DNA from: Octopus bimaculoides
Taxonomy: Eukaryota
Direction: 5' to 3'
Assembly: GCF_001194135.2 (NCBI RefSeq)
Contig: NC_068991.1
Span: 72,534,021 to 72,598,020, forward strand
Length of the DNA stretch: 64,000 nt
Both the position numbers and the translations under genes were made by a program. The notes below the pieces were generated by a model. The model saw only the letters and a list, made by a program, of their open reading frames with translations. It did no database searches and was not told where the DNA came from. Within the stretch, counting starts at the first letter, position 1. Each line of letters begins with the position of its first letter. Positions 2,007-39,240 of this stretch are shown here, in pieces.

Positions 2007-2077
2007 GGGCATATGGCGTAGTGATTAAGAGTCCGAGCTACTAATCCTAAGATTCCGAGTTCGATTCCAGGCAGTGA

Positions 2078-2109
<32 letters not shown>

Positions 2110-2770
2110 GTAATAATAATAATGATAATAATAATGATAATAATGATACTCTTTTACTTTTTTACTTGTTTCAATCATTTGACTGTGGCCATGCTGGAGC
2201 ACCGCCTTTAGTCGAGCAAATCGACCCCAGGACTTATTCTTTGTAAGCCTAGTACTTATTCTATCGGTTCCTTTTGCTGAACCGCTAAGTTACGGGGACG
2301 TAAACACACCAGCATCGTTGTCAAGCAATGTTGGGGGGACAAACACAGACACACAGACATATACACACTCACACATACATATATATNNNNNNNNNNNNNN
2401 NNNNNNNNNNNNNNNNNNNNNNNNNNNNNNNNNTTCCACTCACAAGGCTTTGGTCGGCCCGAGGCTATAGAAGACACTTGCCCAAGGTGCCATGCAGTGG
2501 GACTGAACCCGGAACCATGTGGTTGGTAAGCAAGCTACTTACCACACAGCCACTCCTACGCCTATAAATAATATGATAATGATAATAATAATAAGAAGAA
2601 GAAGGAGGAGGAGGAGGAGGAGGTGGAGGAGGAGAAGAAGAAGAAGAAGAAGAAGTTCGAAATTTCCCCAAGATATCTGATGAAGGTTGTGGGGTATATC
2701 AGCCAAAATGTTGTGTTAACAACAAACAAGATGAGGACAAATATCCGTCAAATGTGAATAATGTAAATAA
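2007..2770 (+). mobile_element. tRNA-head/hammerhead-tail element, copy 1 (interrupted; ribozyme core degenerate)
   Basis: Head 2007-2080 with A box TGGCGTAGTG and B box GTTCGATTC, then (AAT)n; tail 2655-2770 matches copies 2 and 3; split by a family A SINE. Confidence 0.8.
2148..2565 (-). mobile_element. tRNA-derived SINE, family A
   Basis: Reverse complement of the copies at 15183, 52796 and 60611; internal microsatellite and assembly gap. Confidence 0.85.
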
Positions 2771-3107: not shown

Positions 3108-3156
3108 ATCCTCCAAGAAAAAGAGTCGATGCAGTTCAACTGAATGGCTCTCAAAG
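3108..3156 (+). CDS. BRSK2: BRSK/SAD kinase exon: (D)PPRKRVDAVQLNGSQ
   Basis: ttttcag acceptor, gtaaga donor; DPPRKRVD is the conserved post-UBA motif of BRSK1/2; phase 1 to phase 2. Confidence 0.9.
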
Positions 3157-3936
3157 GTAAGATTCTTAACACTGTCTTTTACTGAAACCTATTAACTACC
3201 AAAAAGCTTCACCTAATTCTTCCAATACAATGGAATTGGCTTTTGTCTTTTACATTTTTATCAATATATTTCTGATATAATAGTTTTTTAAAGAGAATTT
3301 TGAATTATGTTTAGTGAATTCTTAAGTTTAGATAACCATCTTCTGCTGCAGAATTTATTTTTAATTATCTCTGATATTTAACTATAAGCAACAAAAATTT
3401 TGAAAAGATATTTTTTTAAGATAGCTCTTTAGCGTTTAGATTACTCCACCAAACATAATGCTTATTTATTTACATCGTTTTTAATTAATCATGCATTATC
3501 ACTTAGCTTTGAGATTCAATGATGTGATTGTTTATTTTTAGAATCATATTGTAGCATAGGTGTGAGGGGCCAGTTGTAGCCAGCTTGAGCATAAAACAGG
3601 TAGAATAGTTGGGTTGGATATGACCAGTTTAAATATCAAATGGTCAGAATAAGACGGAGAATTTGAGGGGGAAAAAAAAAAGGAATAAAAAAACTCCTTT
3701 CCAGTCATCATGGTTGTCTTCATCATCATCATCTTCATCATTATCATCTTCTTCAAATAATCTACTATAACACATTTATAATAGCGATTATTCATGATTT
3801 AGCAAGGTGATTTTTATTTACTTAAACTCATATATATCTGCATTTTTGTGTGATAAACTCAGCTGTCTCAGTTTATATTTCTTTTAAAGGAAGCATTTTT
3901 TTTTTAGTGTTTTAGTTTATGAAAGTGATTTGTATT

Positions 3937-4347
3937 ACAGTTTTATATTTAAGAGATGAGGAATTATTTACATTATTTACATTTGACGGATATTTGTCCT
4001 CATCTTGTTTGTTGTTAACACAAAGTTTCGGCTGATATACCCTCCAACCTTCATCAGGTGTCTTGGGAAAATTTCAAACCTGGGTTCTCATTGCCCATGG
4101 GCATATGGCATAGTGGTTAAGAGCATGGGCTATTAAGCGCAAGATTCCGAGTTTGATTCCAGGCAGTGACCTGAATAAAAATAATAATAATGTTAACATT
4201 GAAAAATACCTTAGGAATGAGAACCCAGGTTCGAAATTTCCCCAAGCCACCTGATGAAGGGTGAAGGGTATATCAGCTGAAATGTTGTGTTAACAACAAG
4301 CAAGGTGAGAACAAATATCCGTCAAATGTAAAGAATGTAAATAATGT
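3937..4347. mobile_element. tRNA-head/hammerhead-tail element, copy 2 (head-to-head inverted dimer)
   Basis: Left arm is the reverse complement of the right-arm tail; forward tRNA-like head at 4099-4172; hammerhead-like motifs at 4017-4062 (-) and 4246-4291 (+). Confidence 0.85.
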
Positions 4348-4595
4348 GAGATTTGTATTTTCATGAAAAATAATTCGACGATCTCAGTTGTGTGTAAACA
4401 TACATAACGTATGTATGTACATACATACATACATATGTGTGTGAGTGTGTGTGTATGTATATNNNNNNNNNNNNNNNNNNNNNNNNNNNNNNNNNNNNNN
4501 NNNNNNNNNNNNNNNNNNNNNNNNNNNNNNNNNNNNNNNNNNNNNNNNNNNNNNNNNNNNNNNNNNNNNNNNNNNNNNNNNNNNNNNNNNNNNNN

Positions 4596-8299: not shown

Positions 8300-8700
8300 G
8301 TAAGTAGCATGGGCTTCATCACTTCTCTCTGTGTTGTTACCTCTGTGTCGTTTGCCTGCACCTGCACATGCATACATACACACACACACACACACACACA
8401 AGCATGCATGCAAGCATACATACATATGCACACATGTACATCCATGGGTGCATATATATATATATATATATATATAGGCAGCAATTTGCAATGTTTCACC
8501 AAAAGGGAGTATTATAATTGTCACTAAATGAGGCTAGAAATAAGAGCTAAACTGTGCTCCTATTTGTATATATGTACACACACACACACACACACACACA
8601 TACGCATATTTATAAAAAATGAAGGCAGCTATATGCAATATAAAACCCCCCCAAAAAATCCAGTTGTCAATAATTGTGACTGAGGGTACTGGGTAGCACC

Positions 8701-16874: not shown

Positions 16875-17763
16875 CAGGGTGCAATGGGTAAATTGTCACC
16901 ATTTTACATTTTTTTATTTTATGCATGTGTATTGTTCGTTTTTGATTTTGTCAACTGCACAGTATAGTAGGGTCAGTTGAGCACCATCTGTGAGAAAAAT
17001 AGCACCATGATGTAATTCAGTCTGCTAGAAATTTGAAAATGACATGCTGTACTGCTTGACATTTGCACTGGAAACTCCAGTACTAACATTTCAGAGTGTT
17101 TGGGTGTCAATCTGAGGACAGTGCAATCTGAGGACATGTACCAAGAGTGATGATAATCAAACACTCAGTCAACATCATGGTGTTTGGAGTGATCACTAGT
17201 GATGGCAACGTTATGCCTACATTCATCTTCCCACATGGCCTCAACCTCAACAGAGAGGCCTACATCAAGTGCCTGGAGGAGGTAGTGCTGCCCTGGGTAA
17301 AGAGGGTGGCTGCTGGAAGACCCTATGTCTGGCAACAGGACTCTGCACCATGCCACACTGCAGGAGAATCCAGTCATGGTTGTCAGACAATTTCTGCAAC
17401 TCCATTACTCCTAACATCTGGCCAACTAACTCCCTAGACTGCAACCCCCTTGATTATTATGCATTGGGCGCAGTTGAGCGGGAGACCAACAAAACTTCAT
17501 GTAACACTAAAGATAAACTGAAGGCAAGGATTATTGCAACATTCACCAACTTAAACAAGAAGACCATTCAGAAGAGTTGCAGGAGATACCAAAGTCGTTT
17601 GGAGGCCGTGGTTGAAGCCAATGGCGATTTTTTTGAATAAATTTACTCTTTAATATTTCAAGATATTTTTATGTAATTCTGGTAAATATATCTGTTACAA
17701 TGAGATGTCAGCATTATTTTCATTTTTGCGTAATTTAGACGACGGTTTATTCACTGCACACTG
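16875..17763 (+). mobile_element. Internally deleted Tc1/mariner transposon, DD37D (maT) type
   Basis: Frameshifted transposase ...WQQDSAPCHT/RRIQSWL...NSLDCNPLDYY gives 37 residues between the 2nd and 3rd D once one lost base is restored; imperfect 23-bp TIRs (17/23), left one preceded by TA. Confidence 0.85.
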
Positions 17764-18344: not shown

Positions 18345-18596
18345 AATGTGAGTGAGTTAGTGAGTGTGTGTGTGCATGTGTGTGAGTGTGTGTGTATGTG
18401 AGTGAGTGTGTGAGTGAGTGAGTGAGTGTGTGAGTGAGTGTGGGTGAGTGAGTGTGTGTGTTTGAGTGAGTGTGTGTGTGTGATTGATTGTGAGTGAGTG
18501 TGTGTGTGTGAGTGTGAGTAAGTGAGTGTGTGTGTGAGTGAGTGAGTGTTTATGTGTGTGAATGAGTGAGTGAGTGTGTGTGTGTGCATGTGTGCA

Positions 18597-18689
<93 letters not shown>

Positions 18690-18718
18690 TTATGTATATG
18701 TCTGTGAGAGTACATATA

Positions 18719-18756
<38 letters not shown>

Positions 18757-18760: not shown

Positions 18761-18932
18761 CACACATGATGCATATACACACAAACATTGAAAAATATAC
18801 TTGGATTATTTCAAATATAACACATCTTCATAAATGTAAATATAATTTTAAGAATTGCAATTAATTAATATTCTTTAAAGATATACTCTTTTGGTTCAAA
18901 TTGTTTATTTTTGTTTGTTTTATTTCCTGTAG

Positions 18933-19135
18933 GAGAAAAGCCAGTATAACAGGAAGTCCTGGTTCATCACCCCTATCAAGTCCAAAGTTGTCTCAACGTG
19001 CTACACCAACTAATAGCCCTACTAATACTCCTCCAACATCCCCAAGAATCACCCCAGCACCATGGAAAACTCGTCTTCATACTATTAAAAACAGTTTTCT
19101 GGGATCTCCTCGCTTTCACAGACGCAAACTTCAAG
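18933..19135 (+). CDS. BRSK2: BRSK/SAD kinase exon: [18 protein letters not shown]...[25 protein letters not shown]
   Basis: Polypyrimidine tract plus tag acceptor, gtattc donor; [14 protein letters not shown] is the diagnostic BRSK/SAD autoinhibitory-region motif. Confidence 0.97.
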
Positions 19136-23855: not shown

Positions 23856-24081
23856 ACCAGATAACTTATATACTCATGTGCACTCACATGCATCTAAACC
23901 CAAATACACATACACTGTGGGATTCCACACAGTTTCCATTGACCAAATTCATTCATAAGGCATTGTTTGATGTAGAGATATATGAATATTTGTGTAATCT
24001 ACATGAAATGGTATCAAGAAGAGACACCATTAAAGGAGAAATAACAATTTCTACATTTATAATGCTTTACCAGTTGGCACA

Positions 24082-24601
24082 TTCATCATCATCCATCATT
24101 TTGAATCTAAGTTTTGTCCCATTAACAGGCGTGGTTGGATCTACCTCAATGCCATAGCAACTGCCCTCACACCATCTTGCCTGGTTTTGGGTGTCCTCTC
24201 TCCTCAAGCCAACCCTCCCAATCTCCTCCTCTACTTGTCCCCTCCACCTTTTCTTCAGTCTACGTTGCTTTTGCTGTCCATTTACCCCAAACTCAAGCAC
24301 CCTCCTCAGAACATTCTCCTCATCCCTCCTCAACACATGCCCATACCACTGCACGTCATTCACCCTTACCAGCTGTTCCACTGATTCCTCCAACTCCTGC
24401 ATCCCCATCAAGTCGTCAGTCAAACAGCCTCACACCACACATTTCGCTCACCATTGCTCTCTCAGTCCTCAAAATTGCCATCTCTCTCTCCCTCAAACAC
24501 CATGTCGCACTCCCATACAGCATTGCAGCTCTCACACAACTCCTATAGAACTTTCCTTTCATCTTCAATGAGAACCTTTTCCCCACATAATAATGCCCCA
24601 C
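24082..24601 (-). mobile_element. RTE-clade LINE 3' fragment
   Basis: ORF track gives KGKFYRSCVRAAMLYGSATW...QWYGHVLRR...KKRW, the typical RTE C-terminus, followed by a (GAT)n tail. Confidence 0.85.
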
Positions 24602-36889: not shown

Positions 36890-38258
36890 GTAAGCCAACT
36901 AAGTACTGTGCCTCACAATTACATATAACTCTCAGAATAATACAAAGCTCAGCTTAGCTTATTTTGTGACTTCACTGTAGCAAGTACCAGTAATTGCATA
37001 GGGGAAGCCTTCGGTATTATCATAATTGCATGTAAATATTGAAGCATGATCACATCTTTGTATATTGTGCTAATTTTGAGAGAGTGTCTTTAAGTTCTTA
37101 ATCTTTTTAATAAAATCTGTTTTTTAACATTAAGTGAATAATGTATTCAGGGTAATTTCTAATTAGGTTATTTAAGCAATCAACCGGGAAAAAATAACAA
37201 GGTTTTTTTTTTTTTTCAAATTTAAATATATGTTTAATTATCATAGATTAGTTATGTTGATTCATATCCTTCTTCTTTCAGAACTTTTATGCTAAAATAG
37301 TTTTAAAACAAAATTTTTAAATGCGGGGTTCAGTCTTACATTTACTAATTTGTATAAATAAATAAATATAAATATATATATATATATGTATGTATGTATA
37401 TACATGTGTATATATATATATATATATATATATNNNNNNNNNNNNNNNNNNNNNNNNNNNNNNNNNNNNNNNNNNATGTATGTATGTATATGTATATGTG
37501 TGTGTATATATATTTATATATATATATATATGCACCATCATCATAACGTATTGAAAACACAACTGTTCTAGCTTTAACTTTTTATTTCATTTAAGTTTTT
37601 CATATTTTTGTATGGGGTTTTTTGCAGTTTCTTTGAAACACTTAAGCTTCCAAATCCAAACTTTCACAGTCTCATCTTCAGGACGACACAGTGCTGCAGT
37701 CTCTTTACAAGTAAATAATACTTACATAATTAGTGTAGACATTACTGCCACAGTCTGAATTTTAGACTGTCATATTATACATCATCAAGTACATATTTTT
37801 GTTAGTGATTACAATATACTATCTATATTATTTATCTTAATATTATTCTGTTTCCATCATTAATCCTGTATTTTTTTTTTTTTTGTGAGGAATTCTATAC
37901 AAGGTAGACATATTGTTTACTAATGTTTTCCTATCTCATTTTGTTTTATATCATGAAGCATAATATACTGCACTTACTCCTTGTTGCAAGTGCATAGTGA
38001 ACTGACTAGAGACTATTGTATTTGTATGGCCAATATGACAGCTAGGGTTATGAAGTTCACAACTTTCATATTAGCAATCAAATCAATAAACCCATTGATC
38101 ATTAGTAGCTTCTTGCATTCTTGTTTATTATTGATAATTTTGTCTTTAATTTTAATGTCTTAGTAGTATATAATTAATGTCAGCTTATATTTGGATGTGG
38201 TGCATTTAGTGTTCTGTTTTATGAGGCTTTTCACAATGTGTTCATTTATTCTATTGAT

Positions 38259-38528
38259 ACATTATTTACATTATTTACATTTGATGGATATTTGTCCTCA
38301 TCTTGTTTGTTGTTAACACAACGTTTCAGCTGATATACCCTCCAGCCTTCATCAGGTGTCTTGGGGAAATCTCGAACCTGGGTTCTCATTCCTAAGGTAT
38401 TTTATGATGTTGTTGGGGTTAGTAGCCTGTGCTCTTAATCACTATGCCATATGCCCGTGGGCAATAGCATAGTGGTTAAGAGCGCGGGCTACTAACCGCA
38501 AGATTCCGAGTTCAATTCCAGGCTGTGA

Positions 38529-38569
<41 letters not shown>

Positions 38570-38672
38570 TCGAAAAATACCTTAGGAATGAGAACAACAA
38601 ACAAAATGAGGACAAATATCCATGAAATGTAAATAATGTAAATAATTCTTCATCACTTAAATATAGAACTGT
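38259..38672. mobile_element. tRNA-head/hammerhead-tail element, copy 3 (head-to-head inverted dimer)
   Basis: Inverted partial head 38415-38456 abuts forward head 38459-38531; left arm carries the hammerhead; right arm has the hammerhead region deleted. Confidence 0.85.
38315..38360 (-). ncRNA. Putative minimal type I hammerhead ribozyme
   Basis: Minus strand reads GACAC-CUGAUGA-A-GGCUG-GAGGGUAUAU-CAGCU-GAAA-CGUU-GUGUU: stem I, conserved core, stem II, GAAA, loopless palindromic stem III, GUU triplet. Confidence 0.7.
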
Positions 38673-39240
38673 ATTATTCTATTGCTTGTGTGCATTTGAT
38701 TCGTATGAATAGATTGTAGAGCCTTAATGCTTGTAGTTTCTGATTTATTTATTGCATTGTATTTATGATTGTATTATTTCTACGGCTGGGTCTATTAGTT
38801 TGTCAGAATACCTGCTGCCAATTAGTGTTTGCTTTATTCTGTAGATTCCTTTAGTGCTTCATTTGTCAAGGACAATCTGTTGAGGGATTTCACCTCTGGC
38901 ATTTGTATCTGTGTGGGCATTTACATTTTCATCCAAGTAAAGGTGTTTGGCATCACACAAGTCAACAGGCATGATTTGCACTTTATTTTTCTATATGAGT
39001 AGTTATGTCTAGAAATGGAGTCACTGTATTGCTAGCAGGGCATTTGTTCCTGAAATATAGAAAAGTTCCGTAGCTTTCCCTTTTTGTATTCTTAGAAACC
39101 CTCTTTCTTCATTACTTAATATTTATACCATTTTAAATGAATTTTCATATGGAGTTTCTTTCTTCATCACCTACGAAGAGAAAAGACCCTGTTTGTCAAC
39201 ATTTCAGGACTAGAAACAATAGAAATCATATGAAATAATA

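Follow-up and report, generated by a model that had tools for sequence, protein, structure and literature searches.

A 64,000-nt stretch of the Octopus bimaculoides genome (contig NC_068991.1, positions 72,534,021 to 72,598,020; hereafter the window) carries three loci of a short repeat in which a head derived from transfer RNA (tRNA) is joined to a tail with a minimal hammerhead ribozyme motif. Judged from its sequence, this repeat is probably a non-autonomous tRNA-derived short interspersed element (tRNA-SINE) that carries the type of 3′ module found in Penelope-like elements (PLEs) and would be copied by the enzymes of a presumed PLE partner, a reading to which we give a probability of about 0.62. 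The module, around 180 nt long, has the predicted layout of a PLE 3′ end, namely a minimal hammerhead, 15 nt, a 9-bp hairpin and 18 terminal nt. The case rests on the completeness of the hammerhead motif, on the conservation of the module across species and on the match of its layout to PLE 3′ ends, and not on covariation.

A composite repeat family with three loci in the window

The window was searched with BLASTN, using the longest copy as query, and with nhmmer. Exactly three loci of the family were found (A, B and C), bearing out the three copies with head, linker and tail that an earlier note on this DNA had described. Each unit measures 250–280 nt and consists of a head of about 75 nt, an (AAT)n linker in which the triplet is repeated from 4 to over 20 times, and a tail of some 150 nt with (AATGTAAAT)2AAT at its end, beyond which an extension of 26–27 nt is optional. 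The tail had earlier been given as about 190 bp ending in (AATGTAAAT)n; its length is corrected here to some 150 nt plus the optional extension. The junction between linker and tail (AACAACATTGAAAAATACCTTAGG) is the same in locus B, in the left arm of locus C and in V1 and V2, two copies from Octopus vulgaris, and all five heads seen in the window and at the O. vulgaris locus (L001) have a tail downstream. A head, a linker and a tail joined by a constant junction define one composite repeat family and exclude a chance motif. The features of the three loci are listed below; bit scores are those of R1, a covariance model built solely from nine SINE tails.

2007–2150, plus strand: locus A, head (2007–2075; B box 2058–2068) and long (AAT)n linker, the linker broken by a foreign insertion
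2655–2770, plus strand: locus A, tail, 5′-shortened, preceded by (GAA/GGA)n, without extension, no detectable target duplication
2672–2717, plus strand: locus A, hammerhead, inactivated (G12 to A), 65.6 bits
3927–3936: locus B, left target-site duplication GATTTGTATT, an exact 10-bp repeat of 4350–4359
3937–4098, minus strand: locus B, inverted arm with extension (3937–3962), tail (3963–4092) and a 6-nt head remnant
4017–4062, minus strand: locus B, hammerhead, core intact, G10.1-C11.1, positions 15.2/16.2 C/U and so not palindromic, 76.3 bits
4099–4349, plus strand: locus B, full unit with A box (4106–4116), B box (4150–4160), short AAT linker and tail without extension
4247–4291, plus strand: locus B, second hammerhead, core intact, one mismatch in helix II, helix I of 3 bp, 68.6 bits
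4350–4359: locus B, right target-site duplication, repeat of 3927–3936
38246–38256: locus C, left target-site duplication TTATTCTATTG, an exact 11-bp repeat of 38674–38684
38259–38456, minus strand: locus C, inverted arm with head nt 1–40 (38413–38456), an internal deletion and a complete tail (38259–38411), no extension (BLASTN, MAFFT)
38315–38360, minus strand: locus C, best minimal type I hammerhead, descriptor match, core intact, G10.1 pairing with U11.1, 77.6 bits
38459–38532, plus strand: locus C, head of the right arm with A box (38465–38475) and B box (38509–38519)
38533–38568, plus strand: locus C, linker (AAT)12
38569–38646, plus strand: locus C, tail of the right arm, ribozyme segment deleted, reference positions ~126–192 missing (BLASTN aligns 1–125 and then 193–246)
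38647–38673, plus strand: locus C, 3′ extension TCTTCATCACTTAAATATAGAACTGTA, 27 nt, the first 7–9 nt pairing with an internal AUGAGGA to give a terminal hairpin
38674–38684: locus C, right target-site duplication, repeat of 38246–38256

The hammerhead motif

The consensus of seven octopus tails, GACAC-CUGAUGA-A-GGCUGG-AGGGUAUA-UCAGCC-GAAA-CG-UU-GUGUU, is a complete minimal type I hammerhead, in which all the core positions (C3-U-G-A-N-G-A9, G12-A-A14, A15.1/U16.1 and H17) are present. Cervera & de la Pena (2014, PMC4209133) described as emerging traits of minimal PLE hammerheads an unpaired nucleotide after A9, a G10.1-C11.1 pair and a palindrome at 15.2/16.2, together with a helix I that is short and a helix II that is long. 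The octopus motif shows the same features, with an extra nucleotide after A9, a consensus G10.1-C11.1, C15.2-G16.2 as the palindrome and helices I and II of 5 and 6 bp, respectively, which upholds its earlier attribution to the Penelope type. The stretch 38315–38360 on the minus strand (GACAC-CUGAUGA-A-GGCUGG/AGGGUAUA/UCAGCU-GAAA-CG-UU-GUGUU), already singled out as the best copy, is an exact match except that C11.1 is replaced by U; its predicted cut after GUU lies between 38320 and 38321 on the plus-strand ruler.

Such a motif is beyond chance expectation. A strict descriptor (helix I of at least 4 bp, CUGANGA, 0–1 extra nt, helix II of at least 4 bp, GAAA, 0–6 nt, U-H) matched only 38315–38360 and 4017–4062 in the window, both on the minus strand, and gave no match on either strand of 5 Mb of composition-matched simulated sequence (10 Mb in all); a relaxed descriptor gave 3 matches per 5 Mb. 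The scoring against hammerhead models that the earlier note had proposed returned nothing, since the Rfam hammerhead models, which require helix III, had no match in the window either at the gathering threshold or at E<=10, as expected for a motif that lacks that helix.

The copies have decayed to different degrees. The core is intact in three of the eight tails, at 38315–38360 (minus), 4017–4062 (minus) and 4247–4291 (plus). Four others have a core disrupted by changes at CpG sites or by a deletion, and the remaining tail has lost it altogether. Among the three intact cores the palindrome is kept only at 38315–38360, with the G10.1-U11.1 pair in place of G-C. GAAA-CG-UU is present in the left arm of C, in V2 and in the tail at L002, having decayed elsewhere to CU, UG, CC or CA. 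An extra A or G follows A9 in all copies, and 10.1–11.1 is G-C in nine and G-U in five of 14 sequences. The differences between copies fall mostly at the two CpG sites of CAGC[CG]AAA[CG]UU and are the usual decay of old methylated repeats.

Does the ribozyme act as a dimer within the inverted units? The earlier note had implied a link between the head-to-head arrangement and dimeric cleavage, a link that does not hold, because the ribozymes lie on opposite strands and locus C has only one. A transcript through such a unit would contain one ribozyme and its antisense, offering no dimer in cis for cleavage, and would fold into a long hairpin. The inverted arms also have no complete promoter. The head-to-head unit is an insertion product and not a functional ribozyme dimer. 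In fold predictions for a monomer, the two-helix hammerhead comes to within 0.6 kcal/mol of the minimum free energy, which speaks for the motif. Double-hammerhead pairing is feasible at -24.3 kcal/mol but differs from the predicted dimer minimum of -31.2, an uninformative result.

The head and its RNA polymerase III promoter

The A box of the head, TGGCATAGTGG, starts at element position 8 and fits TRGCNNAGTGG at 11 of 11 positions, and the B box, AGTTCGATTCC, starts at position 52 and fits the consensus GGTTCGANNCC at 10 of 11. Segment lengths track tRNA numbering, with a 7-nt equivalent of the anticodon loop, a 5-nt variable region and the T-loop TTCGATT, and the stems are largely decayed. 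Neither ARAGORN nor the Rfam tRNA model, the latter even at E<=10, called a tRNA in the head, so that the label "tRNA-derived" is based on the promoter boxes and the layout. We take the silence of Rfam and ARAGORN to mean that these models are blind to a hammerhead lacking helix III and to a cloverleaf that has decayed, and not that the two are absent. The sense strand of every full copy is free of runs of four or more T, in agreement with the earlier claim that no TTTT precedes the ribozyme, and for this reason RNA polymerase III (Pol III) would be expected to read through the unit; the first T4 run downstream lies 6 nt away at locus B and 252 nt away at locus C.

Anatomy of the insertions

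Loci B and C each consist of two arms that present the same 3′ tail outward and their heads inward. An inverted-repeat search confirmed the arms (130 nt at 91% complementarity in B; 54 nt at 96%, 38 nt at 87% and 33 nt at 88% in C). One pair of duplications surrounds each inverted unit (3927–4359 and 38246–38684), which makes each unit a single insertion event. Exact target duplications were found at three of the six loci, of 10 bp at B, 11 bp at C and 10 bp at the V2 monomer of L001. The units are centred on head nt 1, reading TGCCCA/TGGGCA at B (4093–4104) and GCCC-GT-GGGC at C (38453–38462), where the two heads had indeed been said to meet; the inverted arms are thus internally deleted copies and not plain 5′ truncations. 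At C the deletions of the two arms are complementary, the left arm keeping head nt 1–40 and the whole tail, and the right arm the whole head and linker with no ribozyme. The head-to-head arrangement first described there stands, therefore, but not with a ribozyme in both arms, and the left head is reduced to its first 40 nt. Centring on head nt 1 fits fold-back synthesis, or the joining of full-length complementary DNAs (cDNAs), followed by deletions in the palindrome.

Past (AATGTAAAT)n, an extension of 26–27 nt (TCYTCATCWCTTAAATATAGAACTGTA) is present in half of the tails (the left arm of B, the right arm of C, V2 and V3), and exactly one arm of each inverted unit carries it. The extension of C (38647–38673) is homologous to 3937–3962 on the minus strand, to those of V2 and V3 and to the C-terminus of the UniProt entry A0A0L8FV75. 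The extension opens with 9 nt that are reverse-complementary to AGAUGAGGA in the tail, and the two form a 9-bp terminal hairpin. Fold predictions for the four octopus tails with the extension all contain this hairpin.

Insertions of PLEs often have an adjacent inverted copy at their 5′ end and an extension of 30–40 bp at one end (Craig et al. 2021, PMC8557442), and a curation guide gives the same account (PMC8969392). The likeness to Penelope insertions that had been drawn from the inverted repeats is strengthened by the outward tails, the 10–11-bp duplications and the one-sided extension of about 27 nt, all of which match PMC8557442. Other copies are simpler. No terminal inverted repeat was found in V2, V3, V1 or A, and V3 is a 5′-truncated tail. 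Uniform terminal inverted repeats with a duplication of fixed length, the pattern that the earlier note would have taken as the mark of a DNA transposon, are thus not what the copies seen here show, four of them having no inverted arm. Nor did the earlier "retrozyme-like" reading find support, as direct tandem copies with a hammerhead were found at none of the six loci.

Relatives in Octopus vulgaris and in a second assembly

A query with a mariner fragment led to one O. vulgaris locus, L001 (20 kb of chromosome OX597814.1), and to several loci of ERZ21867824, a non-octopus assembly of the European Nucleotide Archive. L001 contains three more copies, V1–V3, of which V2 (18459–18720) has its duplication on either side. 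The ERZ21867824 tails are about 70% identical to the octopus tail (nhmmer; BLASTN E=1e-13), an inverted tail pair being present at one of the loci (L003, 1853–1938 and 2077–2163), and these loci share no other repeats with the window. What is conserved between octopus and ERZ21867824 is the ribozyme-plus-hairpin part only. Helix II shows compensatory changes (GGCUG/CAGCC against GGUCG/CGACC and GGCCG/CGGCC), as does the hairpin (GAUGAGG/CCUCAUC against GAUGAAG/CUUCAUC and UAUGAA/UUCAUA), and in helix I GACAC becomes GAUAC with a matching partner strand.

Pattern scans of metagenome and prokaryote-genome collections revealed no further copy of the family. A protein query with the translated tail had one match only, A0A0L8FV75, an uncharacterized O. 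bimaculoides protein of 51 amino acids that turns out to be a translated SINE tail, from the ribozyme through the 3′ extension. This entry is an annotation artefact.

Two further hammerhead arrangements were observed at L007 of ERZ21867824. At 8325–8470 (minus) an unrelated sequence has the same design. Its tRNA-like head (A box TGGCCGAGCGG, B box GGGTTTCGATTCC) lies no more than about 25 nt upstream of a type I hammerhead whose helix III is a 3-bp palindrome (CCGCA-CUGAAGA-GUUGU/GAUA/ACAAU-GAAA-CAGUCUG-UU-UGUGG), and (AT)n comes next; it was called by neither Rfam nor ARAGORN, and no second copy was found among the loci examined. At 3160–3450 an inverted pair of minimal hammerheads (CCUGAAGAAGGUUAU..AUAACCGAAACGUU; R1 E=0.0025 and E=0.0035), with arms of about 100 nt, sits between (TATC)n/(TA)n and (ACAG)n/(AC)n microsatellites.

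Comparison with Penelope-like elements

The octopus tail was compared with PLE contigs from metagenome eukaryotes (L006, L008, L009 and L010). L006, L008 and L009 encode a GIY-YIG endonuclease, and L010 has, upstream of its endonuclease, a YVDD reverse-transcriptase motif spotted by hand (...SPVIANYFME...YVDDTFVIWPHG). This order of reverse transcriptase and endonuclease in L010 identifies the comparison contigs as canonical PLEs; Pfam returned only a weak GIY-YIG match in them (E=0.0024). In L006, L008 and L009, the three contigs that reach into a 3′ flank, a motif CTGATGA-N-GGAGG-9 nt-CCTCC-GAAA-CG-TY lies 221–333 nt past the stop codon of the endonuclease. L006 and L009 belong to one PLE family, and their similarity ends about 80 nt past the cut site, as compared with 85 nt in the octopus tail. 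After the cut they continue with 18 nt, a 6–7-bp hairpin with a 34-nt loop and 19 terminal nt. In the octopus tail 15 nt separate the ribozyme from a hairpin of 9 bp, which has a loop of 33 nt and is followed by 18 terminal nt. R1 finds the ribozyme of L006 at E=0.005 and that of L008 at E=0.07. The octopus motif itself is located in a SINE-like unit and not in the terminal repeat of an element with reverse transcriptase and GIY-YIG endonuclease. R1 also gave weak matches on the opposite strand, at L008 4799–4847 (minus, E=0.94) and L006 8400–8444 (minus, E=0.1), which may be the inverted terminal repeats of those PLEs.

A model of mobilisation

In the model that we propose, Pol III would start at the head, read through the whole unit and stop in flanking DNA. 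For single minimal hammerheads no cleavage could be detected (Cervera & de la Pena 2014, PMC4209133), so that a lone monomer ribozyme would be expected to be inactive and full-length Pol III transcripts would survive. The 3′ module would then be recognised in trans by the reverse transcriptase and the GIY-YIG endonuclease of a PLE. Integration, as can be read from the sequence itself, produces 10–11-bp duplications and often two copies with tails out and 5′ ends at the centre, only one of them with the last 26–27 nt. An inverted unit might result from two cDNAs primed at two nicks, or from fold-back at the 5′ end of the RNA, with later deletions in the palindrome. As for the ribozyme, it may be kept as part of the module that the PLE enzyme needs, or it may act only when two RNAs pair through the palindrome ACGU. 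That the element represents the first recognised class of PLE-mobilised SINEs, in which a Pol III tRNA head would have captured the 3′ recognition module of a PLE, is a tentative extension of this model that we rate at slightly less than an even chance. Under it, such elements and not truncated PLEs would be the carriers of many among the thousands of "dispersed" minimal hammerheads reported from animal genomes, and the extension would mark the point where the PLE reverse transcriptase starts on a second template.

Alternative explanations

Could the same copies have arisen in another way? The repeat might be an ordinary tRNA-SINE mobilised by a long interspersed element (LINE) of the CR1, L2, RTE or Dong-R4 kind, its hammerhead being a fossil in the tail and its inverted units the result of L1-like twin priming. 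A 3′ hairpin followed by (AATGTAAAT)2 does resemble the stringent type of LINE tail, and no PLE was found near the copies. LINEs, moreover, are abundant in octopus genomes (PMC13282606). Twin priming of the L1 type, however, inverts a different and more 5′ part of the RNA, and that both arms here repeat the same 3′ tail speaks against it. The one-sided extension and a hammerhead placed about 85 nt from the 3′ end match PLE ends, and a match to the full hammerhead descriptor is unexpected by chance, leaving this explanation unlikely. Two separate elements could also have met, a tRNA-SINE ending in (AAT)n and a PLE-derived tail (a fragment of a solo pseudo-long terminal repeat) that landed in (AAT)n. 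PLEs are biased toward microsatellites in their insertions (PMC8557442), the tail of locus A has a different start position behind its (GAA/GGA)n, and foreign elements did enter the linker at locus A and at V1. Independent insertions would nonetheless vary in their 5′ ends, whereas the junction is identical in four copies; none of the five heads is without a tail, and the duplications enclose head and tail together in the V2 monomer and in the B and C units. The constant junction and the shared duplications make a chance meeting of two elements distinctly improbable.

The remaining two alternatives concern the inverted arms and the ribozyme. The long inverted arms of B and C and their duplications would suit a miniature inverted-repeat (MITE) or foldback DNA transposon, Mutator-like for example, with terminal inverted repeats of about 130 bp and 9–11-bp duplications; monomers such as V2, duplicated at its flanks yet with no inverted arm, and truncated copies such as V3 disfavour such an origin, as do arms that are unequal and centred on head nt 1, the extension on one side only and the Pol III boxes, and we regard it as extremely unlikely. 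For a non-LTR retrozyme, in which tandem transcripts are cut by hammerheads and circularised and the circles serve as template for transposition, one can cite a type I hammerhead that needs a partner copy and the proposed dependence of animal retrozymes on PLEs (PMC7229834; bioRxiv 10.64898/2026.07.22.740005). The absence of direct tandems from all six loci disfavours it; besides, both ends of the copies are defined, with head nt 1 as the 5′ one, and are not circularly permuted, and no copy starts at the cut site, so that a retrozyme origin is very unlikely.

The proposal of a tRNA-SINE with a PLE-type 3′ module has in turn to be weighed against several observations that count against it. The hairpin and the short tandem repeat (AATGTAAAT)2 near the 3′ end recall the tails of CR1/L2-type LINEs. 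PLE coding sequence was found neither in the window nor at L001 or the ERZ21867824 loci, by motif patterns or by tblastn with 120 PLE endonuclease fragments, and a GIY-YIG endonuclease probe had 1994 protein matches, of which the 120 listed are all metagenome fragments and include no octopus PLE. The comparison PLEs match the octopus tail in layout and have no alignable sequence with it outside the ribozyme core. Only six loci in total were seen, in the window and at L001; no target duplication was found at A or V1, and the inverted arms keep head nt 1–6 to 1–40, unlike the plain 5′ truncations described for PLEs. All features of the motif occur together in just one of the eight tails, the stability of the whole tail is not unusual (z = -0.97), and none of the eight copies begins at the predicted cleavage site, which gives no sign that the ribozyme ever cuts.

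The covariation statistics belong here as well. When the three PLE ribozymes were added to the alignment, 83.8% of cells were paired as against 71% in shuffles, and 17 cells were doubly changed as against 5.9, values reached by none of 500 shuffles in either case, with slid controls at 19–53%. This excess depends on the three added ribozymes: the nine homologous tails alone gave 83.8% against 83.4% paired, which 250 of 500 shuffles reached, and three pairs with double changes. Two compensatory pairs were counted in the hairpin, and 18 of 500 shuffles gave at least as many. Manual anchoring of the alignments on the motif tilts these figures towards structure. Covariation in helices I and II and in the hairpin is thus suggestive only.

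Neighbouring features of the window

The linker of locus A holds between head and tail a foreign SINE, an assembly gap and (GAA/GGA)n. Insertions into the linker were observed in two of five full copies, at 2151–2654 in locus A (a CORE-type tRNA SINE in reverse orientation and a (GAA/GGA)n array) and at L001 16125–16395 in O. vulgaris (a different repeat of about 270 bp), and the internal (AAT)n microsatellite seems to be an insertion hotspot. The window also contains many scattered copies of a CORE-like tRNA SINE, a mariner-type transposase remnant (17132–17640, plus) with a hypothetical protein from Octopus vulgaris as its nearest named relative, and a C-terminal fragment resembling a LINE reverse transcriptase (24067–24423, minus). 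Candidate exons of a host gene lie at ~3108–3156 (plus), with AG...GT boundaries, and at ~18900–19130 (plus), in a Ser/Pro-rich open frame; if these exons are real, the SINE loci would be intronic.

Known systems and significance

Several parts of this account were already known. Minimal hammerheads have been described as dispersed motifs (PMC4209133, PMC7761336) and also in PLE terminal repeats, Sm-alpha as a repeat combining Pol III and a hammerhead (PMC6765202), and retrozymes as PLE dependants (PMC7229834 and a 2026 preprint). New here are the inverted units made by single insertions and bordered by duplications, the extension on one arm with its hairpin, the PLE-like 3′ layout and the homologous tails elsewhere. 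Surveys of octopus repeats list hundreds of unclassified SINE families (PMC13282606). No account of a SINE that joins a tRNA head to a PLE tail, whether from cephalopods or from other organisms, was found in the literature searched, Repbase, Dfam and the 1994 octopus SINE paper lying outside the search.

What would such an element mean? SINEs are classified by their LINE partners, and a tRNA-SINE with a PLE tail would be a missing partnership. Both the mechanism of Penelope transposition and the role of minimal hammerheads are still called unknown (PMC7761336, PMC8557442). If the proposal is true, a 250-nt passenger that has the 3′ module alone would define the minimal requirements in cis of the Penelope reverse transcriptase and would provide a small template for in vitro work, and it would explain why minimal hammerheads mostly lie away from Penelope reading frames. 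As regards annotation, neither Rfam nor tRNA finders see these units, and at least one copy has entered a database as a translated "protein" (A0A0L8FV75).

The octopus motif resembles the minimal hammerheads of PLEs in being of type I without helix III or loop 3, in its palindromic ACGU, in the extra nucleotide after A9 and the G10.1-C11.1 pair, and in a short helix I with a longer helix II, the format also of L006, L008 and L009; pairs of motifs about 100–700 bp apart on opposite strands have been reported there too. Unlike those hammerheads, it is found in a non-coding, Pol III-headed unit of 250–280 nt and not beside a frame for reverse transcriptase and endonuclease.

The hammerhead of the Schistosoma repeat Sm-alpha is canonical, with a helix III. 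What the octopus element has in common with Sm-alpha is a Pol III-type promoter followed by a hammerhead in a short, abundant and non-coding repeat (Ferbeyre et al. 1998, as summarised in PMC6765202). According to the same summary, Sm-alpha forms repetitive arrays in which two or more units stand in tandem, and in vitro its hammerhead cleaves multimeric transcripts either in cis or in trans. The octopus element, by contrast, is dispersed and without helix III, places its ribozyme at least ~120 nt from the head and has inverted insertions of the PLE type. It is comparable to the non-LTR retrozymes of animals (Cervera & de la Pena 2020, PMC7229834; Li et al. 2026 preprint) in being non-autonomous, in its hammerhead and in its proposed dependence on PLEs. 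Whereas retrozymes form tandem arrays that give circular RNA and have no Pol III head, the octopus element has no tandems, defined ends and target duplications.

In the model of Ohshima and Okada, a tRNA-SINE shares its 3′ tail with a partner LINE; such pairs include the octopus SINEs OK, a family derived from tRNA-Lys, OR1 and OR2, which were reportedly described by these authors in 1994. OR1 and OR2 are CORE-SINEs, and the element described here shows no CORE domain. Like the members of such pairs, it combines a tRNA head with a 3′ module that would derive from its partner, and its tail is more conserved across species than its head. What sets it apart from them is a tail with the features of a PLE rather than those of a LINE.

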